From Caecitellus pseudoparvulus (taxonomy: Eukaryota > Protista > Bigyra: Bicosoecida), in assembly GCA_965644315.1 (NCBI GenBank), contig CBFFRQ010000142.1, positions 1 through 35,798 on the forward strand: 35,798 nt of DNA. Reading direction: 5' to 3'. The notes beneath the pieces were generated by a model that saw only the letters and a program-made list of their open reading frames with translations, was not told the DNA's origin and made no database searches. Positions 541 to 31,085 of this stretch are shown here, in pieces. Positions within the stretch are counted from its first letter, which is position 1, and every line of letters begins with the position of its first letter. Made by a program: the position numbers and the translations under genes.

Positions 541-1942
541 TCAAATCAAGTCTTTCAGGCTCGAAAACATAGCTGCTTGCTGCCGCACAGTGTCTGGGAT
601 CCTGCGATGCCCAGTGAGGCCCAGCAGCTCACGCACGGTGTCTGTGTAGCCATTGGCGCATGCCCATCGGAAGGCGGCCTCAGGTCCACCCTCATCCGCC
701 GCATGCACATCCACCTCCCGCGCCCCAGTCAGGCCCAGCAGCTCACGCACGATATCTGTGTGGCCACTGTGGCATGCCCATAGAAAGGCGGCCTCAGGTC
801 CATCCTCATCCGCCGCATGCACATCCACCTCTCGCGCCCCAGTCAGGCCCAGCAGCTCACGTACGGTGTGTGTGTGGCCATTGCGGCATGCCCATCGGAA
901 GGCGGCCTCAGGTCCTTCATCATCCGCCGCATGCACATCCACCTCTCGCGCCCCAGTCAGGCCCAGCAGCTCACGCACGATGTCTGTGTGGCCATTGGCG
1001 CATGCCCATCGGAAGGCGGCCTCAGGTCCATCCTCATCCTCCGCATGCACATCCACCTCCGGCGCCCCAGTCAGAGCCAGCAGCTCACGCACGATGTCTA
1101 TGTGGCCATTGTCGCATGCCTCTCGGAAGGCGGCCTCAGGTCCATCCCCAGCCGCCGCGTGCACATCCACTTCCCGCGCCCCAGTCAGGCCCAGCAGCTC
1201 ACGCACGACATCTGTGTGGCCATTGTCGCATGCCTCTCGGAAGGCGGCCTCAGGTCCAGCCCCATCCGCCGCGTGCACATCCACCTCCCGCGCCCCAGTC
1301 AAGCCCAGCAGCTCACGCACGACATCTGTGTGGCCACTGTAGCATGCCCATCGGAAGGCGGCCTCAGGTCCAGCCCCATCCGCCGCATGCACATCCACCT
1401 CCCGCGCCCCGCTCAGGCCCAGCAGCTCACGCACGATGTCTGTGTGGCCCCAGCGGCATGCCCCTCGGAAGCCAGCCTCAGGTCCACCCCATGCCGCCGC
1501 ATGCACGTCCACCTCCCGCGCCCCAGTCAGGCCCAGCAGCTCACGCACGATGTCTGTGTGGCCATTGGCGCATGCCTCTCGGAAGGCGGCCTCAGGTCCA
1601 CCCTCATCCGCCGCATGCACATCCACCTCCCGCGCCCCAGTCAGGCCCAGCAGCTCACGCACGATGTCTGTGTGACCATTGTCGCATGCCACTCGGAAGG
1701 CGGCCTCAGGTCCAGCCCCATCCGCCACATGCACATCCACCTCCCGCGCCCCAGTCAGGCCCAGCAGCTCACGCACAGTGTCTATGTGGCCATTGTCGCA
1801 TGCCCATCGGAAGCCAGCCTCAGGTCGATCCCCATCCGCCGCGTGCACATCCACTTCCCGCGCCCCAGTCAGGCCCAGCAGCTCACGCACGATGTCTGTG
1901 TGACCATTGTCGCATGCCACTCGGAAGGCGGCCTCAGGTCCA
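541..1942 (-). CDS. Host ankyrin-repeat gene A, 3' part (12 repeats + RRIPD...LKDLI tail)
   Basis: Joined to 7761-11209 it gives 4851 nt, a 1616-aa ORF, with junction AADGA|GPEAAF. Confidence 0.88.
600..1942 (-). repeat. 114-bp tandem ankyrin-coding repeats (12 units)
   Basis: Unit GPEAAFRxACxxGHTDIVRELLGLTGAREVDVHAAxxx with exact 114-bp period. Confidence 0.95.
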
Positions 1943-2119
1943 CCGAGGTTGCCGGCACCCCAGCCGGCAACCATGTTTCCCGGCAGGAGGGGCGGCGGGC
2001 AGTCCCACGCTAGTGGCACAATTGTCCCCCGCCGCCCCAACGCAGAGTAGACGACGGCAGGACCGGGCATGACAAAACCAGTCATTAGCCGGCCTCGTCA
2101 CTCTCTTTCCTTTTTTTTC
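1942..2119 (+). repeat. Ngaro terminal repeat A1 (~178 bp)
   Basis: Runs from ACCGAGGTTGCCGGC to CTCTCTTTCC-T-tract. Recurs at 7423, 19945, 25424 and 30906. Confidence 0.95.
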
Positions 2120-2122
2120 GAG

Positions 2123-4205
2123 ATGGCATCGGATGATCCAGCTTCCAGCGACACGGAGGGCGGAAGCTGGGAGGACATCCACGACAAAATGATGTCTGTC
2201 AACTCCGCCAAGCAAGCCAAGGCGCTCATAACGGAGCAGGAGTTCGAGTACTGGCTGAAGTGGGCGGATTCTGAGGATTTTGGTAAGATGGAGGCCGCTT
2301 GGCGCCTCCGGGAGGTGCCCGAGGGATTCCGGGCAGATCGCATGCGATCCCTCATTGCGGGCAGAGCTTTCCGCCTCCCCGCTGACGGTGCCCCTCATCG
2401 CGCAGGCGGCTCACCACGGGGGCACGGCACGAAGCGAACCCGTCCGCGCGGTGCGAGCAGTGGCACGCCCTACGGCCCGCACCTACCCCCGCGCCCGACC
2501 CAGCCGGACGCAGTCGCAGGCGACCTCCCGCAAGATCCCGCCACAGTGCTTACGTGGTTCCTGCAGAGGGGAGCGACGGTGCCGAGCGAGGACGTCGCCG
2601 TGCAGCTGCAGTTCTACGTGGGCTTGGCAACGGAGGAGACATCGCCGTACGCCCTCTCCGCTTGGCCTCCACGGCGCTTCGCCGCATGGTGCAGACTCAA
2701 CGGTATTCCCCCCGACCTCACCCCCGACGACATCGTGATGCATTTGCAGCGGGTCCTGGAGGCCGCGCTGGCGGGCGACGACGACTTTGGCGACGACGAT
2801 GCCGGCGCCCCGTTCTTTCCCGTTTTCCCGGGCACCACACCGGATGCCGCCCGGTTACAGCCCCGTGCGGCGGCCCCGGGTCACCCCCCGGCCTCCAAGA
2901 GGCACAGGGCGGCCTATAGCCCGCAGCCCCCCTCCCCCGTGGGGCGGCGGAGCCTCGCCGGCAGTCCACCCCGAAGGCGGGTCGGCTGTTTTCGGTCACA
3001 TGGGGGAGAACAGCGGTCGGTCGTCGCCAGCCGACGAGGTACTGGTCACTGTAGGCGCGCTGCGGGTCATTGGGCCGACCGCACACCCCTCGTCGGCGGT
3101 GGCCCGGGACCGCCTGTCAGCCTTGGGGGCAGTTTTCGCTGCGGGGACCACAGACGCCTTGACCACGGTGGCTGTCGAGATGGCTGAGGCTGCTGCACGA
3201 GAGGTGCCCGCAGCAACGGGCCCAGTGCCGTCAGGTACGTTCCTGTCCCGCCAGCTCCCCCCCCACTCGCCCCGCGTGCCCGCTCCCGGCGACCCGTCCT
3301 GGCTCACAGCCCCCGGCGATGAGGTAGCCCCGCCGTCCGCGTCGGTCATGATGGACGACGCTATGGACGTAGTGACTGCTGTACGCCTGGTGCAAGGGAG
3401 GGTGGAAGTTACAGTTGACCCAACCCATCTAGTGGCAGTAACTGGGGCGGGTGCCCTGTCGGCATGCCACATGCTGGGCAACCGTGGGGGCGCTTGGTGG
3501 CTTGCTGCGATGACCAGGGACTTGCTGACGGCGCCTTCCGACGACCTCCACCGCTCCCTCCGAGCGTTCTGGTGGAAGTGGGCGTCCGAGGTGCCCGCCC
3601 TGGCAGACCAGCGGGGCCTGTGCCGAGCCATGGCGTGCGCACTCCTGATCACAATCGCAGTGCGGGCCGTGGCGCAGACCGCCGCTGCGTTGCCCGAAGG
3701 CCAGCGCAGGCGATGGGCCCAGCTGACGTGGGCCTCCTGGGTGGCCACGTTCCGCACTAACGCCACCATTGTCATGATGGCGTCGGCGACGGGGCAAGCA
3801 CTGGTGGCCAGCTCGCTGGCGCGCGAGGCATGGGCGGCCGGGGCCGCCGCCACACCGATGCCAGGTGCGGGGGGCGGCCCGGCGCAAACCCCCGCTCGTG
3901 GCCCTCCCGCGGGGCTGTACCGGCAGGACGACCCGAGCACATTCGTGTGGTGCCCCGGGTGCGTCGGATCCGACCGGCGGCGCCGGTCGCTGGCATCCTG
4001 CCCACGCCTGGCCCAGCATGTGGCCCACCTGCGCCGGACCCACACAGTCGGAGGTAAGCCCGCAGAACTTACCCAGGCGCAGGCAGTGGCCATGCTGGTG
4101 CGCCAGTGGGAGCGGAAGGTGGCATCCAAGGGACGTGACTTCCAGCGGCGCATGCAGCCCCGCGCTGTCACCACGGCCATGGTGGAGGCAGCTCTCAGCC
4201 TCTAG
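2123..4205 (+). CDS. Ngaro ORF1, putative Gag-like protein with C-terminal CxxC...HxxxxH motif; apparent frameshift in C-runs near 2884-2940
   Basis: ATG (MASDD) lies just after A1. Two overlapping ORFs (2069-3187, 2787-4205) are a single ORF in copy 2. Gag-like call is by position only. Confidence 0.75.
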
Positions 4206-6423
4206 GAGGTGGGCCGGAGCGCGGTGGTGAGAGCGACCACGGGGTACCGGGCCGTGCCCGTGGAGTGGAGGGCTGCCGCCCCGCTCTCGACAGACCACCG
4301 CGCCATGGCCGTGCTCATCGAATCAATGGTCCAGCAGCTGCATGGGGACCGTTGTTGGACTCCACCGGGGCTCTTCGAGGACATCTTGCGTGGGGGCTTG
4401 GACTGGGGCCCCCACCCCGTGGTCTCATACTGGGGTTGCCAGGAGGCCCACGCTGACGTGTGTCCCGCATGCGGCGAGACCACTTCCAGATTACGGCAGC
4501 TTGAGCGGTGCGCAGCCATGCGACTGCTCACCGTGGTCACGCTGCGCGGGTGGGACCCCGCTTGGCTGCTGTTCCGCCGCCCCCCGGCAGCGGCATCCCC
4601 GTCCTCGGCATACGTGCTGCAGCCGCACGACGAGCGGGCGGTGGCAGCGGCCTATGACGCCTTCGCGGCTGCGCGCGTGCTGCAGCCGGTCACCCCCCAG
4701 CAGCTGCAGCAGCACCGAAAGATGGGGGGCCAGCCGCTTCTGCCTTCGTTGTCACGACATGGGCCCCCCAGCCGGGCGTCAGCGACGAAGCTCTGCGACA
4801 GTGGGCTGCTGCGAACCCAGGCGAGGCGGTGCAGGCCGCCAGCTCTTCCCGCGCGCCCGCCCGCCCGAGCCGCCTGTTCCGGGCCAAGCAGCGGGTGGTG
4901 TACGATCTGGCAGCCGTCAACCAGGCCTCAGTGAGCCCCCCATTCCACTACCCCACGCTGGAGAGCTGGGCGCTGCGCCTCCCGCCGAACTCGGACTGTG
5001 TTGTCCTGGACGTGGAAGCAGGGTACACGGCCATCCCCATCGCTCCGTCGGGCGCCGGACTGTTCACCATGCTCGCCCAGGGCAGGCCAGCCTTCCGCAT
5101 GCTTCGGATGGCCTTCGGGTACAGCCCGGCCGGGGCCATTTTCTGCTTTTTTTCTGGACTTCTGGGCGCCAAGATCGAAGCGGCGTTCCCAGCAGGGCAT
5201 GTGGTTGTGTACGTAGACGACGTCGGGCTTGGGGGAGCTACGTTGGGGCCACGGCCATCGATCGTGCCCAAGATAACTCAACTGTTCGAGGACGTGGGCT
5301 TCCGGGTGTCGCGCAAGAAGACGCAAGGGCCACAGCGCGTCGTTCAGTACTTGGGGATGGTGGTCAGGTGTGCCCCGTGTGGGGTGTACCTTGAGTGTCC
5401 TCAAGCCAAACGAACTCAGCTGCGGTGGCAGCTGGCCGCGGTCCTTAATCGCCTCGGCGCTTGCTCCACCATCCCCAAGCGCGTTTTCGCCGCGGTCACA
5501 GGGCGCTTGCACGGCCTGTCGGCCGTGGTGCCCCACGCAAAACAAACGCTGTCGCTCTTGTACGACACCATGCGCACACACAAGTACCGCGTCGGCCCCC
5601 CGGCGCTCTCGTGCCTGTCCCCCCGGCGTCGCACGGGGCCCTGCGGACCCTCCTTGAGGCCCTCGGTGGGCCGTTATCGACGGGCCCGATGCGCCCGCTC
5701 TCCCCACTGTCAAGCAGGTGGCGCGCCGCCCTCTTTGGCTCGTGCGACGCGTCGGGGGAAGGCGGGCTGGGGGCAACAGTGTCGAGGTGGGCAGGGCCAG
5801 GAGAACGCACAGACTCCGCTTGGTACGCGTCCATGCGCATCCCCGGCACAGCCCCGGGCGAGGAGCTCGTGGGAGCCTCCACGATGCTGGAGCTGTACGC
5901 AATCGCCTTGGCTATGGCAATGGCGCGGCATGTTTTTCCCGAGCCGGGGCCGCTGCTGCTATGCCTAGCTGCGGACAGCCAGGCAGCGGTGGCGCTGGCG
6001 CGACGAGGGTACAGCAAGCACAGCCGTGAACTCACGCGCGTCTGCGGGGTCCTCGAGCGGGTTTCCCGCGTTTTGGACGTCCACTTGGCGCCTCGGTGGA
6101 TCCCGAGGAGCCTGAATTGGCGGGCGGACGCCCTCAGCCACCCCGAAAGGGTGGATAGCAGCACACCGGCAGCGCTCGGCCTCCCGCCAGGGCAACCAGC
6201 CGAGCTGGAGGTATCAGCAGGGGGAAGCAGCGCCGCTGAGCGGTGGCATGATGTGTCCCTAGACGTAGGGCCGTCGGGAAAGGCCGGGGCGGGCACCGCG
6301 TGGATTCACTCAGCTCAACTCTCCGTCGCCCTGCACAGACACACTCTGGATAAGGAAGCAGACCTTCTGGCAGATGATCAGGGCCATCCCCGCGTCCCCG
6401 ATCAGCAGGATTCACCAACATAG
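4206..6423 (+). CDS. Ngaro ORF2, reverse transcriptase + RNase H; apparent homopolymer frameshifts near 4724 and 5596
   Basis: RT motifs KQRVVYDLAAVN, LDVEAGY, MAFGYSPAG, YVDD (5210-5221), QYLGM. RNase H motifs CDAS, MLELYAI, ADSQAA, NWRADALS. Start uncertain: readthrough from 4206 or ATG 4305. Confidence 0.92.
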
Positions 6424-7531
6424 GCTGGCAAAGGGGACGGTGGTCAAGTACGTTCGCGCGGTTGCTGGCCTGATCAGGGCCGCTCCAGCACCCCGGGACA
6501 GGGCGCGGACCATGGTGGGCATCTTAACGGGCGGCGTGGCCGCAGGCAGATGGGCCCCCCATCGGGCGAAGCAGATCCTGGCGCAATGGGTCGGTGGTTT
6601 TAGGTATCTGGGCCTGCCAATCCCGTCGCTAGCCCCGCTGGGGCTCACAGTCGGCAGCATCTGCCGGGCAATCCGCCGGCTCCACCGAGGGAGAGGGGAG
6701 CAACACCGCCGCCCTATCAGCAAAGAACAAGTCATGGAGGCCATGAAGCGGGCATGGGACGGGCCACACCTCGGGAGGCATGCCCCAACTGCCGCCGCAG
6801 CTATCTACATCGGCTTTCATGGCATGTGCAGGCCGGGAGAGCTCCGGGGCCTGCGATGGGAGGAGTTGCACTTCGGGCGGGCGGGCCCCCTGCAGTGGGT
6901 GGAGGCCAGGGTCACGGATAAAACGCACCTGAGTGCAAACCGCCACATCCAGGTGGTGCGCCAGGCCGAGTGGGCGGGGGCCTTCGACCGCCTCCGGGAG
7001 CAGGCCCGGGACAAGCGGGGAAGCCTGCTCCCAAGGTGGGCGTGGCTCAGCCTGCAAGGCATCCTGAAGGCTGTAGCGGGCGTGTCCTTGGCCCACCTGA
7101 GACCCGGGGGCAATATGTTCTGGACAGGCCGGGCCCCCGACGTCTTGGTGGAGCACGCGGCGGGCTGGGCGGCTGGCTCCCCCACCCGGGCACGATACTA
7201 CACCCAGGGGGGAGGGGGCGAGGCTGTGGCACGAGGCCATGACACCCAGGGGAGGAAGCAAGCATTGAAAAGTATTGGCGGGTGCCGCAAGGAGGCGTCC
7301 CCTCCCCCAAGAGATGCAGCGAGCCCTGGTGGCCGCTGGCATAGAGGGGGGAGGGGACGGCCTCGAGGCGGGCCCAGTTCAATGCATTTCGATTGCCACG
7401 CACAACGCACCAACACGAGGGAACCGAGGTTGCCGGCACCCCAGCCGGCAACCATGTTTCCCGGCAGGAGGGGCGGCGGGCAGTCCCACGCTAGTGGCAC
7501 AATTGTCCCCCGCCGCCCCAACGCAGAGTAG
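6374..7531 (+). CDS. Ngaro ORF3, tyrosine recombinase
   Basis: GFHGMCRPGEL (Arg I), DKT (Lys), AHLRPGG (Arg II), AGW, RYY (Tyr). Overlaps the ORF2 end by 50 nt. True stop may be near 7242 (see copy 3). Confidence 0.9.
   Translation: MIRAIPASPISRIHQHRLAKGTVVKYVRAVAGLIRAAPAPRDRARTMVGILTGGVAAGRWAPHRAKQILAQWVGGFRYLGLPIPSLAPLGLTVGSICRAIRRLHRGRGEQHRRPISKEQVMEAMKRAWDGPHLGRHAPTAAAAIYIGFHGMCRPGELRGLRWEELHFGRAGPLQWVEARVTDKTHLSANRHIQVVRQAEWAGAFDRLREQARDKRGSLLPRWAWLSLQGILKAVAGVSLAHLRPGGNMFWTGRAPDVLVEHAAGWAAGSPTRARYYTQGGGGEAVARGHDTQGRKQALKSIGGCRKEASPPPRDAASPGGRWHRGGRGRPRGGPSSMHFDCHAQRTNTREPRLPAPQPATMFPGRRGGGQSHASGTIVPRRPNAE
7274..7423 (+). repeat. Ngaro repeat B1 (150 bp)
   Basis: ATTGGCGGGTGCC...CACGAGGGAA. 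Matches 7611-7760, 25275-25424 and 30757-30906. Confidence 0.95.
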
Positions 7532-7601
7532 ACGACGGCAGGACCGGGCATGACAAAACCAGTCATTAGCCGGCCTCGTCACTCTCTTTCCTTTTTTTTT
7601 C
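7423..7601 (+). repeat. Ngaro repeat A2
   Basis: Direct copy of A1 abutting B1, followed by the short linker TTTTTCTCG and then B2. Confidence 0.95.
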
Positions 7602-7610
7602 TTTTTCTCG

Positions 7611-7760
7611 ATTGGCGGGTGCCGCAAGGAGGCGTCCCCTCCCCCAAGAGATGCAGCGAGCCCTGGTGGCCGCTGGCATAGAGGGGGGAGGGGACGGCCT
7701 CGAGGCGGGCCCAGTTCAATGCATTTCGATTGCCACGCACAACGCACCAACACGAGGGAA
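7611..7760 (+). repeat. Ngaro terminal repeat B2
   Basis: Direct copy of B1. Host ankyrin sequence resumes at 7761. Confidence 0.95.
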
Positions 7761-9242
7761 GCCCCATCCGCCGCATGCACATCCACCTCCCGCGCCCCGC
7801 TCAGGCCCAGCAGCTCACGCACGATGTCTGTGTGGCCCCAGCGGCATGCCCCTCGGAAGCCAGCCTCAGGTCCACCCCATGCCGCCGCATGCACGTCCAC
7901 CTCCCGCGCCCCAGTCAGGCCCAGCAGCTCACGCACGATGTCTGTGTGGCCATTGTCGCATGCCTCTCGGAAGGCGGCCTCAGGTCCATCCCCATCCGCC
8001 GCATGCACATCCACCTCCCGCGCCCCGCTCAGGCCCAGCAGCTCACGCACGATGTCTGTGTGGCCATTAGCGCATGCCCATCGGAAGGCGGCCTCAGGTC
8101 CACCCCATGCCGCCACATGCACATCCACCTCCCGCGCCCCAGTGAGAGTCAGCAGCTCACGCACGATGTCTTTGTGGCCATTGGCGCATGCCCATCGGAA
8201 GGCGGCCTCAGGTCCATCCCTATCCGCCACATGCACATCCACCTCCCGCGCCCCAGTCAGGCCCAACAGCTCACGCACAGTGTCTATGTGGCCATTGTCG
8301 CATGCCCATCGGAAGCCAGCCTCAGGTCGATCCCCATCCGCCGCGTGCACATCCACTTCCCGCGCCCCAGTCAGGCCCAGCAGCTCACGCACGACATCTG
8401 TGTGGCCATTAGCGCATGCCTCTCGGAAGGCGGCCTCAGGTCCACCCCATGCCGCCACATGCACATCCACCTCCCGCGCCCCAGTCAGGCCCAGCAGCTC
8501 ACGCACGATGTCTGTGTGGCCATTCTCGCATGCCCATCGGAAGGCGGCCTCAGGTCCATCCCCAGCCGCCGCGTGCACATCCACCTCCCGCGCCCCAGTG
8601 AGGCCCAACAGCTCACGCACGATGTCTGTGTGGCCCATGCGGCATGCCTGTCGGAAGCCAGCCTCAGGTCGATCCCGTGCCGCCGCGTGCACATCCACCT
8701 CCCGCGCCCCAGTCAGGCCCAGCAGCTCACGCACGATGTCTGTGTGGCCACTGTAGCATGCCCATCGGAAGGCGGCCTCAGGTCCATCCCTATCCGCCAC
8801 ATGCACATCCACCTCCCGCGCCCCGCTCAGCCCCAGCAGCTCGCGCACGATGTCTGTGTGGCCTCTGGAGCATGCCTCTCGGAAGCCAGCCTCAGGTCCA
8901 CCCCATGCCGCCACGTGCACATCCACCTCCCGCGCCCCAGTGAGAGTCAGCAGCTCACGCACGATGTCTGTGTGGCCATTCTCGCATGCCTCTCGGAAGG
9001 CGGCCTCAGGTCCACCCCATGCCGCCACATGCACATCCACCTCCCGCGCCCCAGTCAGGCCCAACAGCTCACGCACGATGTCTGTGTGGCCCCAGCGGCA
9101 TGCCCATCGGAAGCCAGCCTCAGGCCCATCCTCATCTGCCGCGTGCACATCCACCTCCCGCGCCCCAGTCAGGCCCAGCAGCTCACGCACGATGTCTGTG
9201 TGGCCATAGCGGCATGCGACTCGGAAAGCGGCCTCAGGGCCC
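7761..9242 (-). repeat. 114-bp tandem ankyrin-coding repeats (13 units)
   Basis: 13 x 114 = 1482 bp, same consensus. Confidence 0.95.
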
Positions 9243-11209
9243 TGTTTGCAAACCCCAAACCAGATCTGGACATTTCCTTCCGCATGTACATCTACTGCCT
9301 CATCCCCCGTCAAAGACAGCAGCTCACGCACTCTCGCAAGCTCCCCATCCTTGCACGCTGCAACAAACGCTGTGGTGTTCTCCTCGCTGAACTTCACTTG
9401 CTTGGCAGCAACCTCCGACTCTGTAGCCGGTACAGCCTCTGCGTCAGCTGTCTCCGCCTGACCTGCCGCAAGAGCTGCCTGTCCCCCATCAAGCACACCC
9501 CGCACCGCACTCTCCACACCTTCCAGATGATCCACTCCACCCCCACTTCCTTCACACGCCTTCGCATATGCACCCATGCAGCAACCACTCCCTCCCCGCG
9601 CCAACACCTCCAACGCGCCCGACAATGCATGTTCGCCACCTTCGCCGCTGCCGACGAAACTTGACACAGCGCCCGATCCGCCACCCATCGCACCACCGTC
9701 CACACCAAGCACCTCACGCAGCACACTCAACACACCACCACCCTCGTCGTCACGGCTGCCGCCATAAGATCGATCTTTCCCCCACACACCGCCACATGCA
9801 CTCAACACCACCTCACACTCACCCCCATCCAGTGCGCCCACCAGATCACTCACACTGCCACTCCCCACACCCACCACCACGAAGCTCCCCACACCAACAC
9901 CACTCAGACTCACTCCACACGCCTCAGCCACGGCACACACACCCAGCACCCTCACAGCCACACGCTGCTTCACCTCCAGCCCAACATCGCCCCACGCTTC
10001 ATCCTCCAGGAACACCCTCAGCGGCCACCCCGCCTCACACTGCACCTGCACCGTCACCATGCTCCTCTGGCCGAGTGGCTCATCAGCTCGACCCGCTGTA
10101 CAACTGTGAGCCAGTGCTGCTCTGCGTGGTGTCTGTGCCATCCGCGGCAGTCCATGGGCGATGCGAGCCGCTTCGCCACGCTTCACGGCCCCAACACTCG
10201 TGGCAAGTGCTGTCGCACCCGCCTCCACATTCGCTGTCCACTGCTCCACATCCACAGCTCCACCCACATCCTCATCCACGATCTCGCTCCGTCCACTGTA
10301 CACACTCACGTCATTGCCGTTCAGACACTCCAAGCCGCCCGACAAGTCCAACCCACCCACAGCCCTCACCTTCCGACCACTCATCACCGGCGCACACCCC
10401 AACAGCCCACGCAGCTCCTCCACCGCACTCGCTGCACACTCCAAGTGCTCCGCAGCACTCTCACTCGCCAGATCGCCTGCCGCCTCGCCTCGCAGCCACT
10501 CAGCTTGCTGACGCATGCCAGCCAGAGCCGCATCCACCGCTGCTTCGCCACCAGCATCATGTGTGACTGGGCCACCCTCACCAGCCACATCCACATCGGC
10601 CCTCTCGAAGCCTTGCCACCATCGCGTCAGATCAGCCAGCGCACCCTCCACGTTCACACCGGCCCGCACACTGCCCCAAGCACCCACAATGGCGCCCCAC
10701 AGTGCGTCGCCCTCCGGCACTGCATCCACATCCACACCAGACACCGCTGTATGAAGCACATCCACCGCGGTGAAGCACCGGAACGACAGGTACTGCAGCG
10801 CAGCACACACGCCACCTCGCTCACGCTGCCCCGCCAACAGCCCAGCCTGCTCCAACAGCGCACTCCCTGCATCACGCAGGGCCGCCTCCAGCTCCACCAG
10901 GCTCATGGCCGATGGGGTGTCACTTGCAGCCGGCGCTTCGCCACGCCCAATGGCTGCCAGTCCTCGCAGTGCTGGGCCGTGGTCCATGACGCTGCCCGGC
11001 AGGCACTTCATCTTGCGCAAGCATGCCGCCACCGCCTCAGCTTGCGTGCTGTCGATGCCTGCAGTGGGTGGTGCACTGCCCTCCATAGCTTGTCCTGTTG
11101 CTGCTGCCTGTGGCGTGGGGCACGGCGCTGTGTGCCGTGCAGTGTTGGCGACATGCTTTGTCGCAAGTGCTGGCGAAAGCGAGGTGCCATGCCCACACCC
11201 ACGCACCAT
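7761..11209 (-). CDS. Host ankyrin-repeat gene A, 5' part (N-terminal domains, cap repeat, 13 repeats); interrupted by Ngaro
   Basis: Open frame, paralogous to 13385-15622. Alternative start MEGSA at 11086. Confidence 0.88.
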
Positions 11210-11821
11210 GGCGATGGACGGCAGGGGGTCTAGTCAGGCGTAGCTGTGCTGTAAAGCCGACTCCTGCGGGGTGATGGCAGTGGGCAGTTGCATTGGTGTG
11301 GCGGGGAGGCGCTGTCGCAGCTGACGTGTGCGAGGGAGCAACTTCCGCACTTGCACCAGTGCACGCTCACCTGTGGCGGCCAAGACTGGAGACAAGGCAG
11401 AAGACACGCTGATGTCCGGATGCCCAATGAACCCACAAGTAAGAGTGGGAAATGGATGAGGAGCAATTTGGTGCAAGACATGGGAAGGGTGCCCCGCTCC
11501 GCTCGATGCGGTGCCCATCATCTCAGCAAGAAAGGTGCGGAACAAGCTATCTGGACATCCGCAAGATCCCCGTTCGAGTGCTGACGGGAGCTGCGTCAAG
11601 GCGCGGAGTGCGATAGAGGGGGTCGACTCGTGCGCTCCGAGCAGCGCTGTCCATACACTGCACTGGGCGGGGCAAAACCGCCCGCTCTGCTGTGCCCGCA
11701 CTTTTGCGTGTAAGGGTTGCGGCCTTGTCGTGTCTGGCAGTGTGACTCCGTCACACTTCCTTGCCCACACGATATTCATTGGCGTGGTGGCGACTGCTCT
11801 CTCATACGCCACAACAAAGCC

Positions 11822-12282
11822 ATGGCGCTGTCCAGCGCCTCCATGGGGGCACCCGTCTTCCAGCTGGTGCCCCTTGCAGGTGGTACACTGGCTGTTTCAG
11901 GCGGTGGCAGCTCCAAGACTGGCATTGAGAATGCTCTGGTGCGCAGGCGGGCATTCGACGGCTGCGAGTGGCGTGCAAATTCCGCAACCGCCGCTGCTGT
12001 GCTCCACAGACCATGGTGCACGTGGAGAACACCGGCGCCAACAAAGTGGAGCTGGCGAAAGGCACTGCCTTCCTCTCGGGCAGCACCTTCATCACGCACG
12101 TGGCAGTGTCGGAGGACGTGCGTGCCGGCGCAGCCGACGTGGCAACCACTTTTACACCTACCTCGGCGACTTTCGCAGGGTAAGCGCGTGGCAGGGGCGG
12201 CTGGAGACAGCATCGTCGTGTTCAACCGCGACGGCGAGAGTGGCAGGTACGGGAGCCGGCAGCCAGGTGGCTGGGCGCCGCC
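11822..12282 (+). pseudogene. Unidentified coding-like fragment (MALSSASMGAPVFQLV.../MVHVENTGANKVEL...); copy at 16232-16695
   Basis: Protein-like segments in different frames, ATG in gccATGg context, possible GC-AG intron near 11964-12009. Confidence 0.3.
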
Positions 12283-13200
12283 CTGAACACCGTGGCAGTG
12301 GTGAGCGTGGGGAGCTGCCCCCTGCCGCCTGGCGTGGCGGCGTGGCTGGCTGGGGATGAGCGCCTGTTCGCCCTGGCCCGGGCAGCCTGTGTGCAGCTGG
12401 TGGACGGAGCGCTGAGCAGGGAGCAGGGCACGGCTCTGGCGCCGGTGCTGCTGTTCACGGTGGTGGGGGTGTACGCCACAACGCCGCCCAGCTCCCGCAA
12501 CACCATCCCGCCCCACCTCGCCCAGCGCACTGCTCGCTTGGCCGGCAAGTGCACCCTGCTCGTGGGTGGCGTGGAGGTGGTAGGCGGCAAGGCGGTGCAG
12601 CGTGACAGCCCGCCCTCCACACACACCGCCCACAACGACGGAGTTGCGCGGGACCCGCTGTTCTGGCTGCTGCAGCGCCTCAGCAACACGGCAGTGCAGC
12701 AGGGCGGGCCGGCGGCCACCACGGGCCTGAACGTGTTCGGGGCCATGGCTGGGCAGGTGCCACAGGCGGACCTGCAGCGCTACGTGGTGCCAGTGGCGCG
12801 GACAGTGTTCCGCACTGTGCAGGCGGCAGAGCACGTGGCCAGCGACCCCCGCCTGGCCGACGCGCCATCCTGGTCAGAGCAAGCTCAGCAGGCGGCCGCT
12901 GCAGCGGAGGCAGGTGGCTTGGCATCGGAGGTCATGGAGGCGGTGCAGGCTGCCATGGGCGCAGATGTGTTCCTGACGGCGTACAACGGCGAGCGGCGAG
13001 TCAGGGCAGCGGCGAAGGAGCGGCGGGCGAAGCAGGTGGTGCAGTAGGCGGTGGTGAACCCGGCAGCAGCTGCCGCACGCCCGAGTCGGAAGTCACAGGC
13101 GAAGAATCGCCACGTGGCGATGCGCATGGACATGGTGAAGGTGCTGCGGAGGCGGTGGTGGGAAGGGCAAGAAGCGTGCGAGGGAGGCGCCAGAGGGGTT
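12283..13200 (+). pseudogene. UTP20: UTP20-like C-terminal fragment, unit 2; premature TAG at 13045
   Basis: AACVQL..LSREQG..VLLF, LFWLLQRLS, NVFGAMA..LQRYVVPVARTVFR, LASEVMEAVQ..FLTAYN, AVVNP. TAG here where the sister copies have GAG. Confidence 0.65.
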
Positions 13201-13384
13201 GATGTGTGGAGGGGAGTGCAATGCAGGTGTGGGAGCGGGGGGGCGTTGAAGTGGTGGTGAGGTGTGCTGTGTGGTGTGTGGAGGAGGGACGTGTATGCTG
13301 GTATGGAGGTGTGGCGGGTGTGCTGGCCTGATGTGGGGACCAGGTTTGCCACATGGTGCATTAGTCTGTGCTTGGGGCCTGGGG

Positions 13385-15622
13385 CTAAATCAAGTCTTTC
13401 AGGCTCGAAAACTTAGCTGCTTGCTGCCGCACAGTGTCTGGGATTCTGCGAACGTCAATCAGGCCCAACAGCTCACGCACGATGTCTGTGTGGCCCCAGC
13501 GGCATGCTCCTCGGAAGCCAGCCTCAGGTCCATCCTCATCCGCCGCATGCACATCCACCTCCCGCGCCCCAGTCAGGCCCAGCAGCTCACGCACGATGTC
13601 TGTGCGGCCCCTGGCGCATGCCACTCGGAAAGCGGCCTCAGGGCCCTGTTTGTGAAACCTAGGCCTCACCTCAACTCTTCCTTCCACATGCACATCCACT
13701 GCCTCATCCCCCGTCAATGCAAGCAGCTCACGCACTCTCGCAAGCTCCCCATCCTCGCACGCTGCTACAAACGCTGTGGTGTTCTCCTCGCTGAACTTCA
13801 CTTGCTCGGCAGCAACCTCCGACTCTGTAGCCGGTACAGCCTCTGCGTCAGCTGTCTCCGCCTGCCCTGCCGCATCAGCTGCATGCTCCTCATCGAGCAC
13901 ACCCCGCACAGCACTTTCCACACCTGACAGGCGCCCCACTCCACCCCCACTTCCCTCACATGCCATCGCATATGCACCCATGCAGCAACCACTCCCTCCC
14001 CTCCCCAACACCTCCAACGCGCTCGTCAGTTCAAGCTTTACACCTTCACCACTGCCCACGAAAAGTGACCCAACGCCCGGTCCGCCACCCAACGCACTAC
14101 CTCCTACACCAAGCACCTCACGCAGCACACTCAACACACCACCACCCTCATCGTCACCGCTGCCGCCATCAGAGCCACCTGTGCCCCTCACACCGCCACA
14201 CGCAGTCAGCACCACCTCACACCCGCCCCTATTCAGCGCCCCCACCAGATCACCCACACTGCCACTCCCCACACCCACCACCACGAAGCTCCCCACACAC
14301 ACGCCACTCACATCCACCCCACATGCCTCCGCCACCGCACACACACCCAGCACCCTCACAGCCACGCGCTGCTTCACATCCTGCCCAACATCGCCCCACG
14401 CTTCATCCTCCAGGAACGCCCTCAGCGGCCACCCCGCCTCACACTGCACCTGCACTGTGACACTGCTCCTCTCGCCAACCGGCTCATCAGCTCTGCCAGC
14501 TGAAGTACTGTGTGCTAGTGCTGCTCTGCGTGGTGTCTGTGCCATCCGAGGCAGGCCATGCGCGATGCGAGTCGCTTCGCCACGCTTCACGGCGCCAACA
14601 CTCGTGGCAAGCGCCCTCGCACCCGCCTCCACACTCCCTGCCCACTGCCCCACATCCACAGCTCCACCCACATCTTCATCCACGATCTCAACCCGTCCAC
14701 TGTACACACTCACATCCTTGCCGTTCAGGCACTCCAAGCCGCCCGACAAGTCCAACCCACCCACAGCCTTCACCTTCCGACCACTCATCACCGGCGCACA
14801 CCCCAGCAGCTCACGCAGCTCCTCCACTGCACTCGCAGCACTCTCCAAGTGCTCCGCAGCACTCTCACTCCTCAGCTCGCCTGCCGCCTCGCCTCGCAGC
14901 CAACCAGCCTGCTGCCGCATGCCAGCCAGAGCCGCATCCGCCGCTGCCTCGCCACCGGCATCATGTGTGACTGGGCCGCCCTCACCAGCTTCATCTACAT
15001 CTGCCCCCTCGAAGCCCTGCCACCATCGCGTCAGGTCAGCCAGCGCACCCTCCACGTTCACACCGGCCCGCACACTGCCCCAAGCACCCACAATGGCGCC
15101 CCACAGTGCATCAACCCCCGGCACTGCATCGGCACTCAAACCAGATGCCGCCTGATGAAGCACATCCACCGCGGTAAAACACCGGAACGACAGGTACTGC
15201 AGCGCAGCACACACACCACCTCGCTCACGCTGCCCCGCCAACAGCCCAGCCTGCTCCAGCAGCGCACTCCCCGCATCACGCAGTGTAGCTTCCAGCTCCA
15301 CCAGGCTCATGGCCGATGGGGTGTCATGACCTGCAGCAGGCGCTTCGCCACGCCCAATGGCTGCCAGTCCTCGCAGTGCTGGGCCGTGGGCCATGACGCT
15401 GCCCGGCAAGCACTTCATCTTGCGCAAGCATGCCGCCACAACCTCAGCCTGTGCGTCGTCGATGCCTGCAGTGGGCGCTGCACTGCCCTCCATGGCTTGT
15501 CCTGTTGTTGCTGCCTGTGGCGTAGGGGAGGGACAGGGCGCACTGTGCCGTGGTGTGTGTGGGACACGCTTTGTCGCAAGTGCTGGCGAAAGCGAGGCGC
15601 CATGCCCACATCCACGCACCAT
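13385..15622 (-). CDS. Host ankyrin-repeat gene B (intact, 745 aa, cap + 2 repeats)
   Basis: Uninterrupted intronless ORF, colinear with gene A. Alternative start at 15493. Confidence 0.88.
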   Translation of the reverse strand: MVRGCGHGASLSPALATKRVPHTPRHSAPCPSPTPQAATTGQAMEGSAAPTAGIDDAQAEVVAACLRKMKCLPGSVMAHGPALRGLAAIGRGEAPAAGHDTPSAMSLVELEATLRDAGSALLEQAGLLAGQRERGGVCAALQYLSFRCFTAVDVLHQAASGLSADAVPGVDALWGAIVGAWGSVRAGVNVEGALADLTRWWQGFEGADVDEAGEGGPVTHDAGGEAAADAALAGMRQQAGWLRGEAAGELRSESAAEHLESAASAVEELRELLGCAPVMSGRKVKAVGGLDLSGGLECLNGKDVSVYSGRVEIVDEDVGGAVDVGQWAGSVEAGARALATSVGAVKRGEATRIAHGLPRMAQTPRRAALAHSTSAGRADEPVGERSSVTVQVQCEAGWPLRAFLEDEAWGDVGQDVKQRVAVRVLGVCAVAEACGVDVSGVCVGSFVVVGVGSGSVGDLVGALNRGGCEVVLTACGGVRGTGGSDGGSGDDEGGGVLSVLREVLGVGGSALGGGPGVGSLFVGSGEGVKLELTSALEVLGRGGSGCCMGAYAMACEGSGGGVGRLSGVESAVRGVLDEEHAADAAGQAETADAEAVPATESEVAAEQVKFSEENTTAFVAACEDGELARVRELLALTGDEAVDVHVEGRVEVRPRFHKQGPEAAFRVACARGRTDIVRELLGLTGAREVDVHAADEDGPEAGFRGACRWGHTDIVRELLGLIDVRRIPDTVRQQAAKFSSLKDLI

Positions 15623-16695
15623 GGCAATGGATGGCAGGGGGTCTAGTCAGGCGTAGCTGTGCTGTAAAGCCGACTCCTGCGGGGTGATGGCAGTGGACGC
15701 GTGTGTTGGTGCTGTGGGAAGGCGCTGTCGCAGCTGACGTGCGAGGGTGCAACTTCCGCACTTGCACCAGTGCACGCTCACCTGTGGCGGCCAGAAGTGG
15801 AGACAAGGCACAATGCACGCTGATGTGCAAATGTCCCGTGGCATCACAGGTGTTTGGGATATAAAAGAGGTGCATTTCGGTGGCAGGCATCTCAAAATGT
15901 GTGCAGGTCCGCTCGATACGGTGCGCATCATCTCAGCAAGAAAGGTGCGGAACTAGCTATCTGGACATCCGCAAGATCCCCGTTCGAGTGCTGACGGGAG
16001 CTGCGCCAAGGCGCGGAGTGCGATAGAGGGGGTCGACTCGTGCGCTCCGAGAAGCGCTGTCCGTGCACGGCACTGGGCAGGGCAAAACCGCCCGCTTTGC
16101 TGTGCCCGCACTTTTGCGTGTAAGGGTTGCGGCCTTGTCGTGTCTGGCAGTGTGGCTCCGTCACCCTTCCTTGCCCACACGATATTCATTGGCGTGGTGG
16201 CGATTGCTCTGCCCCAAGCCACAACAAAGCCATGGCGCTGTCCAGCGCCTCCATGGGGGCACCCGTCTTCCAGCTGGTGCCCCTCGCAGGTGGTACTCTG
16301 GCTGTTTCAGGTGGTGGCAGCTCCAAGACTGGCATTGAGAATGCCCTGGTGCGCAGGCGGGCATTCGACGGCTGCGAGTGGCGTGCAAATTCCGCAACCG
16401 CCGCTGCTGTGCTCCCCAGACCATGGTGCACGTGGAGAACACCGGCGCCAACAAAGTGGAGCTGGCGAAAGGCACTGCCTTCCTCTCGGGCAGCACCTTC
16501 ATCACGCACGTGGCAGTGTCGGAGGACGTGCGTGCCAGCGCAGCCGACGTGGCAACCACTTTTGCACCTTCCTCGGCGACTTTCGCAGGGCAAGCGTGTG
16601 GCAGGGGCGGCTGGAGACAGCATCGTCGTGTTCAACCGCGACGGCGAGAGTGGCAGGTACGGGAGCCGGCGGCAGCCAGGTGGTTGGGCGCCGTC

Positions 16696-17600
16696 CTGAA
16701 CACTGTGGCAGTGGCGAGCGTGGGGAGCTGCCCCCCACCACCTGGCGTGGCGGCGTGGCTGGCTGGGTATGAGCGCCTGTTCGCCCTGGCCCGGGCAGCC
16801 TGTGTGCAGCTGGCGGACAGGACGCTGAGCAGGGAGCAGGGCACGGCTCTGGCGCCGGTGCGGCTGTTCACGGCGGTGGGGCTGTACGCCACGACGCTGC
16901 CCAGCTCCCGCAACACCAACCCGCCCCACCTCGCCGAGCGCAGTGCTCGCTTGGCCGGCAAGTGCACCCTGCTCGTGGGTGGCATGGAGGTGGTGGGCGG
17001 CAAGGCGGTGCAGCGTGACAGCCCGCCCTCCACACACACCGCCCATGACGACGGCGGTGGTGCGCGTGACCCGCTGTTCTGGCTGCTGCAGCGCCCCAGC
17101 AACACGGCAGTGCAGCAGGGCGGGCCGGCGGCCCCCACGGGCCTGAACGTGTTCGGGGCCATGGCTGATCAGGTGCCGCAGGCGGACCTGCAGCAGTACG
17201 TGGTGCCGGTGGCACGGGCAGTGTTCCGCACTGTGCAGGCGGCAGAGCACGTGGCCAGCGACCCCCGCCTGGCCGACGCGCCATCCTGGTCAGAGGAAGG
17301 CACAGCAGGCGGCCACTGCAGCAGAGGCAGGTCCCTTGGCGTGGGAGGTCATGGAGGTGGTGCAGGCTGCCATGGGTGCAGATGCGTTCCTGACGGCGTA
17401 CAACGGCGAGCGGCGAGTCAGGGCAGCGGCGAAGGAGCGGCGGGCGAAGCAGGTGGCGCAGGAGGCGGTGATGAACCCGGCAGCAGCTGCCGCACGCCGC
17501 AGTCGGAAGGCACAGGCGAAGAAGCGCCATGTGGCGAAGCGCATGGACAAGCTGAAGGTGCTGCGAGGCGGTGGTGGGAAGGGCTGGAAGCGGGTATGGG
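16696..17600 (+). pseudogene. UTP20: UTP20-like C-terminal fragment, unit 3; frameshift near 17298
   Basis: Same motifs, split between ORFs 16378-17634 and 17336-17797. Confidence 0.65.
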
Positions 17601-17806
17601 AGGCGTTGGTGCGGTGCGGAGGGGAGTACAGTGAAGGTGAGGGGGGGGGGGGGTGCGTGGGAATGGTGATGAGGTGTGATGCGGTGTGGTGTGTGCGGTG
17701 GGTTGTGGTGCGGTATGGGCAGAGGTGGAGGTGGGGCAGGTGTGCTGGTCTGAGGTGCGTGTCAGGTTTGCCACATGGTGCATTAGTCTGTGCTTGAAGC
17801 TTGGGA

Positions 17807-19945
17807 TCAAATCAACTCCTTCAAGCTCTCAAACTTGGCGGCTTGCTGTCTCACGCTGTCCGGGATTCTGCGATGCCCAGTGAGGCCCAGCAGCTCACGC
17901 ACGACATCTGTGTGGCCATTGACGCATGCCCATCGGAAGCCAGCCTCAGGTTCACCCCGATCCGCCGCATGCACATCCACCTCCCGCGCCCCAGTGAGAG
18001 CCAGCAGCTCACGCACGATGTCTGTGTGGCCACGCTCGCATGCCCATCGGAAGGCGGCCTCAGCTCTACCCCGATCCGCCGCATGCACATCCACCTCCCG
18101 CGCCCCAGTCAGGCCCAGCAGCTCACGCACGATGTCTGTGCGGCCCCTGGCGCATGCCCATCGGAAGCCAGCCTCAGGCCCATCCCCATCCGCCGCATGC
18201 ACATCCACCTCCCGCGCCCCATTCAGGCCCAGCAGCTCACGCACGATGTCTGTGCGGCCATTGGCGCATGCCCATCGGAAGCCAGCCTCAGGCCCATACC
18301 TATCCGCCGCATGCACATCCACCTCCCGTGCGCCGCTCAGGCCCAGCAGCTCACGCACGATGTCTGTGCGGCCCCTGGCGCATGCCACTCGGAAAGCGGC
18401 CTCAGGGCCTTCTCTATAGAATCTAGGCCTCACCTCAACATTTCCTTCCACATGCACATCCACTGCCTCATCCCCCGTCAATGCCAGCAACTCGCGCACT
18501 CTCGCAAGCTCCCCATCCTTGCACGCTTCCACAAACGCTGTGGTGTTCTCCTCGCTGAACTTCACTTGCTCGGCAGCAACCTCCGACTCTGTAGCCGGTA
18601 CAGCCTCTGCGTCAGCTGTCTCCGCTTGACCTGCCGCACCAGCTGCCTGCTCACCATCAAGCACACCCCGCACCGCACTTTCCACACCTTCCAGACGCCC
18701 CACTCTACCCCCGCTTCCCTCACACGCCATCGCATATGCACCCATGCAGCAACCACTCCCTCCTCGCCCCAACACCTCCAGCGCGCCCGACAGTGCACGC
18801 TCATCACCTTCACCACTGCTCACAAAGCTTGACCCAACGCCCGAATCGCCACCCAACGCATCACCTCCCACACCAAGCACCTCATGCAGCACATTCAGCA
18901 CACAACCACCCTCACAGCTGCCACCATCTGCGCCACCTGTACCCCACACACTGCCACATGCACTCAACACCACCTCACACCCACCCCCATCCAGTGCGCC
19001 CACCAGATCACCCACACTGCCACTCCCCACACCCACCACAACGAAGCTCCCCACACCCACACCAGCCAGACTCACTCCACATGCCTCCGCCACAGCACAC
19101 ACACCCAGCACCCTCACAGCCACGCGCTGCTTCACCTCCAGTCCAACATCGCCCCACCCTTCATCCTCCAGGAACACTCTTAACGGCCACCCCGCCTCAC
19201 ACTGCACCTGCACCGTCACCATGCTCCTCTGACCGAGTGGCTCATCAGCTCGGCCAGCTGAAGTACTGTGTGCCAGTGCTGCTCTGCGTGGAGTCTGTGC
19301 CATCCGCGGCAGTCCATGGGCGATGCGAGCCGCTTCGCCACGCTTCACAGCGCCAACACTCGTGGCAAGGGCTGTTGCACCCGCCTCCACACTCCCTGCC
19401 CACTGCTCTACATCCCCAGCTCCACCCACATCCTCATCCACGATCTCAACCCGTCCACTGTACACACTCACATCCTTGCCATTCAGGCACTCCAAGCCGC
19501 CCGACAAGTCCAGCCCACCTACAGCCCTCACCTTCCGGCCACTCATCACCGGCGCACACCCCAACAGCCCACGCAGCTCCTCCACCGCACTCGCTGCACA
19601 CTCCAAGTGCTCCACAGCACTCTCACTCCTCAGCTCGCCTGCCGCCTCGCCTCGCAACCACTCAGCCTGCTGACGCATGCCAGCCAGAGCCGCATCCGCC
19701 GCTGCCTCGCCACCAGCATCATGTGTGACGGGGTCACCCTCACCAGCCACATCCACATCCACCCCCTCAAAGCCTTGCCACCATCGCGTCAGATCAGCCA
19801 GCGCACCCTCCACATTCACACCGGCCCGCACACTGCCCCAAGCACCCACAATGGCGCCCCACAGTGCGTCGCCCTCCGGCACTGCATCGGCACCCACACC
19901 AGACACCGCCTGATGCAGCACATCCACCGCGGTGAAGCACCGGAA
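17807..19945 (-). CDS. Host ankyrin-repeat gene C, 3' part (cap + 5 repeats); interrupted by the Ngaro concatemer, 5' part outside window
   Basis: Homology to genes A and B stops at FRCFTAVD, exactly at the Ngaro junction. Confidence 0.85.
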   Translation of the reverse strand, partial: FRCFTAVDVLHQAVSGVGADAVPEGDALWGAIVGAWGSVRAGVNVEGALADLTRWWQGFEGVDVDVAGEGDPVTHDAGGEAAADAALAGMRQQAEWLRGEAAGELRSESAVEHLECAASAVEELRGLLGCAPVMSGRKVRAVGGLDLSGGLECLNGKDVSVYSGRVEIVDEDVGGAGDVEQWAGSVEAGATALATSVGAVKRGEAARIAHGLPRMAQTPRRAALAHSTSAGRADEPLGQRSMVTVQVQCEAGWPLRVFLEDEGWGDVGLEVKQRVAVRVLGVCAVAEACGVSLAGVGVGSFVVVGVGSGSVGDLVGALDGGGCEVVLSACGSVWGTGGADGGSCEGGCVLNVLHEVLGVGGDALGGDSGVGSSFVSSGEGDERALSGALEVLGRGGSGCCMGAYAMACEGSGGRVGRLEGVESAVRGVLDGEQAAGAAGQAETADAEAVPATESEVAAEQVKFSEENTTAFVEACKDGELARVRELLALTGDEAVDVHVEGNVEVRPRFYREGPEAAFRVACARGRTDIVRELLGLSGAREVDVHAADRYGPEAGFRWACANGRTDIVRELLGLNGAREVDVHAADGDGPEAGFRWACARGRTDIVRELLGLTGAREVDVHAADRGRAEAAFRWACERGHTDIVRELLALTGAREVDVHAADRGEPEAGFRWACVNGHTDVVRELLGLTGHRRIPDSVRQQAAKFESLKELI

Positions 19946-20125
19946 CCGAGGTTGCCGGCACCCCAGCCGGCAACCATGTTTCCCGGCAGGAGGGGCGGCG
20001 GGCAGTCCCACGCTAGTGGCACAATTGTCCCCCGCCGCCCCAACGCAGAGTAGACGACGGCAGGACCGGGCATGACAAAACCAGTCATTAGCCGGCCTCG
20101 TCACTCTCTTTCCTTTTTTTTCGAG

Positions 20126-25532: not shown

Positions 25533-25604
25533 ACGACGGCAGGACCGGGCATGACAAAACCAGTCATTAGCCGGCCTCGTCACTCTCTTTCCTTTTTTTT
25601 CGAG

Positions 25605-30725: not shown

Positions 30726-31085
30726 CACCCAGGGGAGGAAGCAAGCATTGAAAAGTATTGGCGGGTGCCGCAAGGAGGCGTCCCCTCCCCCAAGAGATGC
30801 AGCGAGCCCTGGTGGCCGCTGGCATAGAGGGGGGAGGGGACGGCCTCGAGGCGGGCCCAGTTCAATGCATTTCGATTGCCACGCACAACGCACCAACACG
30901 AGGGAACCGAGGTTGCCGGCACCCCAGCCGGCAACCATGTTTCCCGGCAGGAGGGGCGGCGGGCAGTCCCACGCTAGTGGCACAATTGTCCCCCGCCGCC
31001 CCAACGCAGAGTAGACGACGGCAGGACCGGGCATGACAAAACCAGTCATTAGCCGGCCTCGTCACTCTCTTTCCTTTTTTTCGAG

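Follow-up and report, generated by a model that had tools for sequence, protein, structure and literature searches.

Hypervariable ankyrin repeats joined to a kinase-like fold: a candidate receptor family in the flagellate Caecitellus pseudoparvulus

Introduction

Immune-receptor repertoires built from near-identical repeats whose contact residues are diversified are documented in fungi, among the NLRs (NOD-like receptors, where NOD is the nucleotide-binding oligomerization domain), and a related logic has been described from lampreys and other animals and from plants. For free-living protists, next to nothing is known about such repertoires. Fungal NLRs with ankyrin (ANK), tetratricopeptide (TPR) or WD repeats carry near-identical tandem repeats and differ in repeat number from paralogue to paralogue and from allele to allele (Dyrka et al. 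2014, PMC4986451; Podospora het-d/het-e). Positive selection acts on about five positions of each ankyrin repeat, in the inner helix and beta-hairpin. One upstream module can carry different repeat types, and the genes form large clusters with birth-and-death turnover. The present study concerns a contig of the heterotrophic flagellate Caecitellus pseudoparvulus (GenBank assembly GCA_965644315.1, contig CBFFRQ010000142.1), which carries three minus-strand genes of one family, here called AB, C and D, that resemble the fungal receptors in these respects. They join an N-terminal module of roughly 600 amino acids to an array of 38-residue ankyrin repeats, or, elsewhere in the family, of Sel1/TPR repeats. 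The window, that is, the whole stretch of DNA analysed, is this complete 35.8-kb contig, in a genome assembly of 30.6 Mb, 215 contigs and ~66% GC. Both this GC content and the retrotransposon described below would suit a Cafeteria-like bicosoecid (PMC8547959). We consider it probable that the family forms a diversified ligand-recognition receptor repertoire of non-NLR type, immune-like or serving allorecognition.

High internal conservation with diversified contact sites is already known from fungal NLRs; new here is the chassis. In place of a NACHT or NB-ARC NOD, these proteins have a helical domain and a kinase-like fold that lacks kinase motifs, without a P-loop. The repeat is 38 rather than 33 amino acids long, and the host is a stramenopile flagellate instead of a fungus.

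An ankyrin array is combined with a kinase or pseudokinase fold of the tyrosine kinase-like (TKL)/RIPK/IRAK neighbourhood in RNase L (ankyrin sensor, pseudokinase and RNase), RIPK4/ANKK1, TNNI3K and ILK, as it is here. RNase L is an antiviral protein that senses its ligand through the ankyrins. Unlike the ankyrin-kinases, the C. pseudoparvulus proteins have no detectable sequence similarity to any kinase, their ankyrins are C-terminal, hypervariable and variable in number, an additional helical domain is present at the N-terminus, and nuclease and death domains are absent. MLKL (four-helix bundle, brace and pseudokinase) shares with them a helical N-terminal region followed by a pseudokinase-like fold, but has no repeat sensor. 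Libraries of designed ankyrin repeat proteins (DARPins), finally, have a fixed framework between capping repeats, as do the arrays described here.

A first-pass annotation, made from the letters of the contig, had described a natural DARPin-like library of 25 repeats in positions 541-9400 and had read it as a modular recognition protein, either an immune-type receptor or one with a programmable repeat code. It also compared the array with the internally conserved repeats of fungal NLRs, a parallel that holds (PMC4986451). Full-text literature searches returned no paper describing this family, and the Cafeteria genome and virophage papers make no mention of ankyrin.

Results and Discussion

Hypervariable sites in the ankyrin repeats

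The window encodes 32 minus-strand units of 38 amino acids that start with GPEAAF: 12 in 541-1941 and 13 in 7760-9241 (gene AB), 2 in 13418-13645 (gene C) and 5 in 17840-18409 (gene D). Tandem Repeats Finder places 114-nt arrays at 610-1942, 7762-9238 and 17876-18406, with 87-90% matches. Pfam Ank_2 is matched at E values of 1e-51 and 2e-55 (170.7 and 182.7 bits, cut-off 27.3) and Ank at 123 bits (cut-off 21.1), and the sequence matches in the PDB are ankyrin proteins and DARPins. The unit counts agree with the annotated 25 repeats in the interval and 32 in total. Throughout, the unit is 38 residues (114 nt), unlike the canonical ankyrin unit of 33; in alignments, four of the extra residues follow helix 2 and one lies in the turn. 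The 25 units of gene AB had been called nearly invariant at the DNA level, which is somewhat generous for a mean pairwise identity of 87% (66-100%).

Variation within this scaffold is concentrated in a few residues. Among the 29 internal repeats of the window, only positions 8, 11, 12, 37 and 38 reach an entropy of 1.67 bits or more, and 18 positions do not vary at all. The five variable sites, out of 38, account for 59% of the non-consensus residues (binomial P = 5e-37), so the variation is focused and not even, as the first-pass annotation had maintained. The residue variants it listed are all present (W, E, V, G or Q at FR[x]AC, ten residue pairs after it, and the loop triplets). Nor is the variation mostly synonymous: by the Nei-Gojobori method (NG86), the ratio of nonsynonymous to synonymous substitution rates (dN/dS, or omega) among window repeats is 2.9-3.3 at the five variable codons and 0.28-0.29 at the remaining ones.

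The pattern extends across the genome, for which first-look searches returned 1435 candidates with a four-repeat query and 2589 with a single repeat. In 331 canonical repeats from 38 open reading frames (ORFs) outside the window, a set drawn from part of the genome loci and leaving out distant paralogues (39-66% identity), the same five positions have entropies of 2.9-3.3 bits and 16-19 residue types each, against at most 1.8 bits elsewhere in the repeat. The five sites also rank among the most variable in 70 repeats, again of 38 amino acids, from metagenomic relatives. The hypervariable-site pattern is far beyond chance.

For 126 repeat pairs with a proportion of synonymous scaffold differences (pS) below 0.05, dN at the hypervariable sites is 0.515 and scaffold dS is 0.030, a 17-fold difference that is enlarged by selecting pairs on low scaffold pS, which pushes the denominator downward. 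Pairwise dN/dS estimates ignore recombination, which is rife in such arrays, and the values are strong indications, not formal tests, of diversifying selection on five residues per repeat.

In 360 repeats, the third base is T in 62% of the codons at position 12 and in 83% of those at position 38 (AAT, GAT, GGT and CAT, for example), with bases 1 and 2 variable, in a GC-rich genome. The third base is seemingly frozen from an ancestral unit, and this fits very recent non-synonymous diversification.

The family might have no recognition role at all and consist of structural or scaffolding ankyrins, in which exposed residues drift freely and concerted evolution homogenises the rest. Surface residues are the least constrained part of a repeat protein, gene conversion can inflate contrasts between sites, and many copies are broken by transposons. 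Drift, however, would lead one to expect omega near 1 and not 3-4.5, and it leaves the 17-fold excess of hypervariable dN over scaffold dS unexplained. Other exposed positions (3, 16, 19, 20 and 28) are conserved, the three variable sites of helix 1 are spaced i, i+3, i+4, and the residue types found at each site, 16-19 in number, include W, R and Y, which are typical of interfaces. We regard free drift as unlikely.

Targeted mutagenesis, by a diversity-generating retroelement (DGR) or another reverse-transcriptase-dependent process, would be a different source of such extremely focused variation. Reverse-transcriptase elements lie inside and beside family genes, and the mostly fixed third-base T of codons 12 and 38, next to variable first and second bases, would suit it. 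Such a mechanism fails, since the changes are not confined to adenines. Positions with G, A or T vary, and the codons TGG, ATG, AAG and GAG at site 12 require third-base changes. An invariant template repeat was not seen in the material analysed, and the retrotransposon insertions disrupt genes and have no fixed flanking arrangement. We therefore rejected it, and give it hardly any probability.

Position of the variable sites on the ankyrin fold

The Pfam Ank profile aligns with the repeat position for position over helix 1. An alignment with the engineered consensus protein OR265 matches D36-x37-x38-G1 to the DxxG turn and x11-x12-G13-H14 to the xxGH end of helix 1. Ahead of positions 11 and 12 by one helical turn (i, i+3, i+4), position 8 shares their face of helix 1. 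An alignment with Kidins220 moves the turn by one residue, which leaves an uncertainty of one residue either way in the turn mapping. By homology, the five sites would line the concave binding groove of the ankyrin array, three on the helix 1 face and two on the beta-turn. Entropy and the OR265 alignment together agree with the annotated picture of a fixed scaffold with hypervariable helix-1 and beta-turn residues.

Sites 37, 38, 11 and 12 correspond to DARPin library positions 2, 3, 13 and 14, as reportedly numbered by Binz et al. (2003). On that alignment and numbering, four of the five natural hypervariable sites fall on randomised positions. The natural repeat differs from the designed one in a helix-2/loop segment that is 5 residues longer, in the additional variability of position 10 and in the conservation of library positions 5 and 33. 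The natural arrays also run to 27 repeats or more and are attached to a module that looks like a signalling one. The family amounts to a natural experiment on which ankyrin positions tolerate or reward diversification, and its outcome largely agrees with the choices of protein engineers. In the ankyrin repeats of fungal NLRs, the positively selected sites likewise lie on the inner-helix and hairpin surface (PMC4986451).

The two variable segments had also invited comparison with the repeat-variable diresidues (RVDs) of transcription activator-like effectors (TALEs), which near-identical tandem repeats with few variable residues superficially resemble. In a code of this kind, each repeat would read one nucleotide or residue with a small alphabet. 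The proposal fails because there is no small alphabet: the 331 repeats contain 181 distinct triplets at positions 8, 11 and 12 and 296 distinct five-site combinations, with many residue types at every site. The repeats have the ankyrin solenoid fold, with a groove for protein binding, and intact genes have as few as 2 repeats. With 296 combinations in 331 repeats the code was rejected, and we see almost no chance of it.

The N-terminal module

In the genome, the N-terminal module is matched 71 times, mostly within open frames of 600-1900 amino acids; Pfam yields no match to it. An exhaustive HMMER scan of 1.84 billion representative proteins returned only 19 relatives, all strong. A set of 5.8 billion proteins contained 11, every one of them from eukaryotic DNA in metagenome or Logan assemblies, and the homologue contigs (Logan, ENA) are genomic, with several genes each. 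Paralogues of the module are under purifying selection, and because their omega is 0.37 the module is real coding sequence.

We modelled the module of paralogue C with AlphaFold2 from a 17-sequence alignment, obtaining a predicted local distance difference test score (pLDDT) of 80 and a predicted TM-score (pTM) of 0.80. The model has a helical domain at about residues 13-231 and a kinase-like fold at about residues 228-520. In structural comparison by VIA-align, residues 228-520 matched 229 representative PDB chains at Z of 8 or higher, and the best 50 of the 229 are all protein kinases or pseudokinases. IRAK4 (Z 13.7), a rice receptor-like kinase (13.6), RIPK2 (13.4) and the rat MLKL pseudokinase (13.0) score highest, over ~225 aligned residues at a root-mean-square deviation of ~3.6 A. 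TNNI3K, RIPK1/2 and RNase L are all among the fold matches. The best 50 Foldseek matches are nearly all kinases or kinase-like, none of them at E of 0.001 or below.

At the sequence level, a kinase is not recognisable. No kinase Pfam match was found at E up to 10 in 10 family members, and the module has no VAIK, HRD or DFG motif. Among the residues invariant in the 17-sequence alignment there is neither Lys nor Asn, and a single Asp, D363. Judged from the order of secondary-structure elements, D363 would lie in the alpha-D region, outside the catalytic cleft, and ACG would stand at the place expected for DFG. The kinase-like domain is likely, though not proven, to be a pseudokinase.

A place among the NLRs is not supported. 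Neither NACHT, NB-ARC nor another Pfam NTPase was found in the window proteins, nor a Walker A motif (GxxxxGK[ST]), and the predicted fold of residues 228-520 is kinase-like and not of the STAND (signal transduction ATPases with numerous domains) type.

The helical domain of ~230 amino acids has no convincing fold match in the PDB (Foldseek, VIA) or, by shape or features, in the ESM Atlas. Modelled alone it reached a pLDDT of 85; the best Z was 6.8, on a helical hairpin, Foldseek E values were 0.55 or higher, and TM-scores in the Atlas were at most 0.35. Full-length MLKL (4btf) appears at E 0.034 in the Foldseek list that holds the kinase matches. The helical domain, modelled on its own, gave no convincing match to the four-helix bundle of MLKL or to another fold, and an MLKL-like bundle is not supported by the models.

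A crude hydrophobicity scan found no signal-like N-terminal or transmembrane stretch; no 20-residue window has more than 10 strongly hydrophobic residues, a peak reached inside the kinase-like fold. The family proteins appear to be cytosolic. This bears on another explanation of the diversity, namely that these are secreted or surface-exposed variant proteins, acting in antigenic variation or as effectors. Large, tandem families that diversify fast are characteristic of effectors and variant surface antigens. The result of the scan, the typically cytosolic nature of ankyrin and kinase-like folds, and the likely life of the organism as a free-living bacterivore speak against this explanation. 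We consider an exported role very improbable.

Family size, array dynamics and proposed function

The genes belong to a lineage-restricted family of about 70, in which the number of repeats varies from 2 to 27 among paralogues. Repeats B12-B13 of gene AB equal A4-A5 at 99-100%, a two-repeat cassette duplicated inside the array, and B8-B9 resemble A1-A2 at 95-97%, again a cassette duplication within the array. Repeats of one array (87% mean identity) are about as alike as paralogous genes are to each other (about 90%). Together, the cassette duplications and the similar identity within arrays and between genes fit unequal crossing-over and concerted evolution.

The repeat type itself is exchangeable. 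In one relative (P0006), the N-terminal module is followed first by one or two ankyrin units and further on by nine Sel1 repeats (E 2e-80), and a 1917-residue open frame at G000 C154:18701-24352 (minus strand) has the module followed by a long Sel1 (TPR-like) array in place of ankyrins. This is a combinatorial use of repeat sensors like that of fungal NLRs.

In the mechanism that we propose, unequal crossing-over and cassette duplication would keep the scaffold homogeneous and alter repeat number, and diversifying selection would alter five residues per repeat in the ankyrin groove. Because the five diversified residues appear to lie on the groove, the array can be read as a diversified ligand sensor. 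The N-terminal module would transmit or execute the response, with the motif-less kinase fold presumably acting as a switch or scaffold. The whole would follow an NLR-like logic of non-self recognition or allorecognition without a NOD domain. Ligand binding, signalling and an immune role are what we infer by analogy with the described systems.

More tentatively, the family may represent an undescribed, NOD-free class of eukaryotic innate-immune or non-self receptors, in which hypervariable ankyrin or Sel1 arrays, a pseudokinase switch and a novel helical output could sense viral or bacterial proteins and trigger defence or cell death, perhaps in a flagellate that serves as host to giant viruses and virophages. 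A Ngaro-type element may, in addition, prefer these genes as insertion targets. We see this as a possibility, though less likely than not.

Several observations weigh against a receptor function of this kind. The pseudokinase call comes from absent motifs and secondary-structure order rather than from structures aligned residue by residue; with no fold matched by the helical domain, a role as executioner is a guess; and the placement of the five sites on a single surface follows from sequence homology and not from the coordinates of an array. Estimates of dN/dS in tandem repeats are confounded by recombination and gene conversion. Two of the three family genes in the window, AB and D, are broken. 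Finally, the sensor is not always coupled to the N-terminal module: ankyrin-only ORFs carry the same 38-residue hypervariable repeat behind a short conserved N-terminus (MAT...QWxAAC...LW.IL), with 8 units in L036 (G000 C144:20001-24000) and at least 18 in L049 (G000 C163:32001-35793).

Within a recognition role, the system could serve allorecognition, mating or kin discrimination rather than the sensing of pathogens. Internal conservation, variation in repeat number and positive selection on the binding face are the signature of fungal incompatibility NLRs (PMC4986451; also PMC12222747). The entropy and dN/dS data do not separate the two uses. About 70 paralogues are many for a compatibility system, however, and the window contains no partner locus. 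The organism is not known to undergo cell fusion or to have a sexual cycle. On balance, a dedicated allorecognition system seems rather unlikely.

If the genes encode a diversified receptor repertoire, the same evolutionary logic as in fungi, with a helical domain and a motif-less kinase fold replacing the NOD, suggests convergent invention of modular receptors. The family also provides concrete candidates for the sensing of viruses, prey or conspecifics in a heterotrophic flagellate. In a transcriptome study of C. burkhardae, which is not the source species, a generic ankyrin InterPro domain is enriched among genes up-regulated in stationary phase (PMC7852580), which bears on the present family at most indirectly.

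Disruption of gene AB by a retrotransposon

The 25 repeats between 541 and 9400 are present as annotated, but they do not form a continuous array: positions 1942-7759 are a retrotransposon, and the repeats belong to one interrupted gene. The ORF at 7379-11209 exits the repeats at ...VDVHAADGA into element sequence, and the ORF at 541-2085 passes from element sequence, in which it starts, to the repeats at GPEAAFRVAC. When positions 7760 and 1941 are joined, a normal repeat boundary reappears in the DNA, in frame, with no duplication or loss and one ambiguous A (1 nt). From this exact junction it follows that the supposed 25-repeat library is a single gene with an N-terminal module, a cap, 24 internal repeats and a C-terminal cap.

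On the minus strand, the N-terminal module of gene AB occupies 9362-11209, with the likely start at a Met at 11086, and comprises the helical domain, the kinase-like fold and a low-confidence linker rich in Gly and acidic residues. A degenerate N-terminal capping repeat (9242-9361) begins FVAACKDGELARVRELL and carries a variable insert ahead of the first GPEAAF unit; hmmsearch detects a first, weaker ankyrin unit in every paralogue, which supports such a cap. The upstream half of the array (7760-9241) has 13 internal 38-residue repeats, B1-B13, with hypervariable codons 8, 11, 12, 37 and 38 in each 114-nt unit. The downstream half (541-1941) consists of 11 internal repeats and a C-capping repeat (574-1941), the conserved tail RRIPDTVRQQAAMFSSLKDLI and a stop codon at 541-543.

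The inserted element is a plus-strand, Ngaro/DIRS-like retrotransposon of 5.8 kb, with a match to RVT_1 (E 6e-8) in the reverse transcriptase (RT) ORF at 4829-5968. It has split direct repeats (1942-2019 equals 7423-7500, and 7274-7423 equals 7611-7760), and the junction of its ends recurs internally. This architecture is that described for Ngaro elements in Cafeteria (PMC8547959). The insertion at 1942-7759 has no target-site duplication. For the 3' ORFs of the element, no integrase or recombinase match was found in Pfam, NCBIfam or PDB sequences that would identify a tyrosine recombinase, only a weak RNase H match (E 0.008). Two plus-strand ORFs, 2787-4205 and 4209-4934, share a frame with one stop codon between them, and the RT ORF lies in another frame, an arrangement that may reflect read-through with a subsequent frameshift or a separate ORF. 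At least 17 further full copies, 99.9% identical to this one, are present in the genome. Gene AB was disrupted very recently and is probably non-functional.

Of roughly 20 Ngaro-like copies, 9 lie inside family genes or within about 2 kb of them, in a genome of which the family makes up about 1%, a share of copies far above expectation. Besides 1942-7759 and 19945-35798 in the window, these are C79:7983-13800, C79:16198-22037, C21:14445-20271, C72:45254-51075, C71:55609-61429, C22:47053-52926 and C158:3402-3799, with placement judged from coordinates only. At least five of the nine are inside coding sequence (in the ankyrin array and at about residues 69, 133, 140 and 472 of the N-terminal module), one is 16 nt beyond the 3' end of a gene, and three are in intergenic spacers of family clusters. 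The distribution suggests a target preference of the element, or a tolerated landing zone, in family genes.

Organization of the gene cluster

Comparison of the window with itself reveals two layers of repetition. The first is a tandem unit of ~4.4 kb and ~90% identity, with one minus-strand gene in each copy. The second is the plus-strand element of 5.5-5.8 kb, which is single at 1942-7759 and forms a concatemer from 19945 to the end of the contig.

Paralogue C (13385-15622, minus strand; 745 amino acids) has the N-terminal module, the cap, one internal and one C-capping repeat, and is the sole uninterrupted gene of the cluster. Paralogue D (17807-19944, minus strand) has 5 repeats and the N-terminal module from about residue 133 on; its 5' part has been lost to the retrotransposon concatemer at 19945. 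The concatemer (19945-35798, plus strand) consists of head-to-tail units, 99.8-99.9% identical, that recur about every 5.48 kb. Neighbouring units have a terminal repeat in common, and the sequence of their junctions is that of the internal junction copy of the element at 7400-7445. The contig stops inside the concatemer, so the stretch seen is a minimum length.

The 2.2-kb intergenic spacers 11210-13384 and 15623-17806 were duplicated along with the genes (~90% identity). Long ORFs of the spacers, on both strands, have no Pfam match. One of them, a minus-strand ORF of 352 amino acids (11776-12834), was treated as spurious: it has an odd composition rich in R, H, P and A, no Pfam match, and stop codons in several paralogous copies.

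All paralogues end in a conserved tail, RRIPD[TS]VRQQAA[MK]F[SE]SLK[DE]LI, followed by a stop codon (544-573, 13388-13417 and 17810-17839, minus strand). The same tail is found at dozens of gene ends across the genome and may be a targeting or interaction motif. At the other end of the array, the insert of the N-terminal cap just before the first GPEAAF unit (9242-9300, 13646-13700 and 18410-18470, minus strand) differs between the genes: it reads EGNVQIWFGVCKQ in B, where C has EGRVEVRPRFHKQ and D has EGNVEVRPRFYRE.

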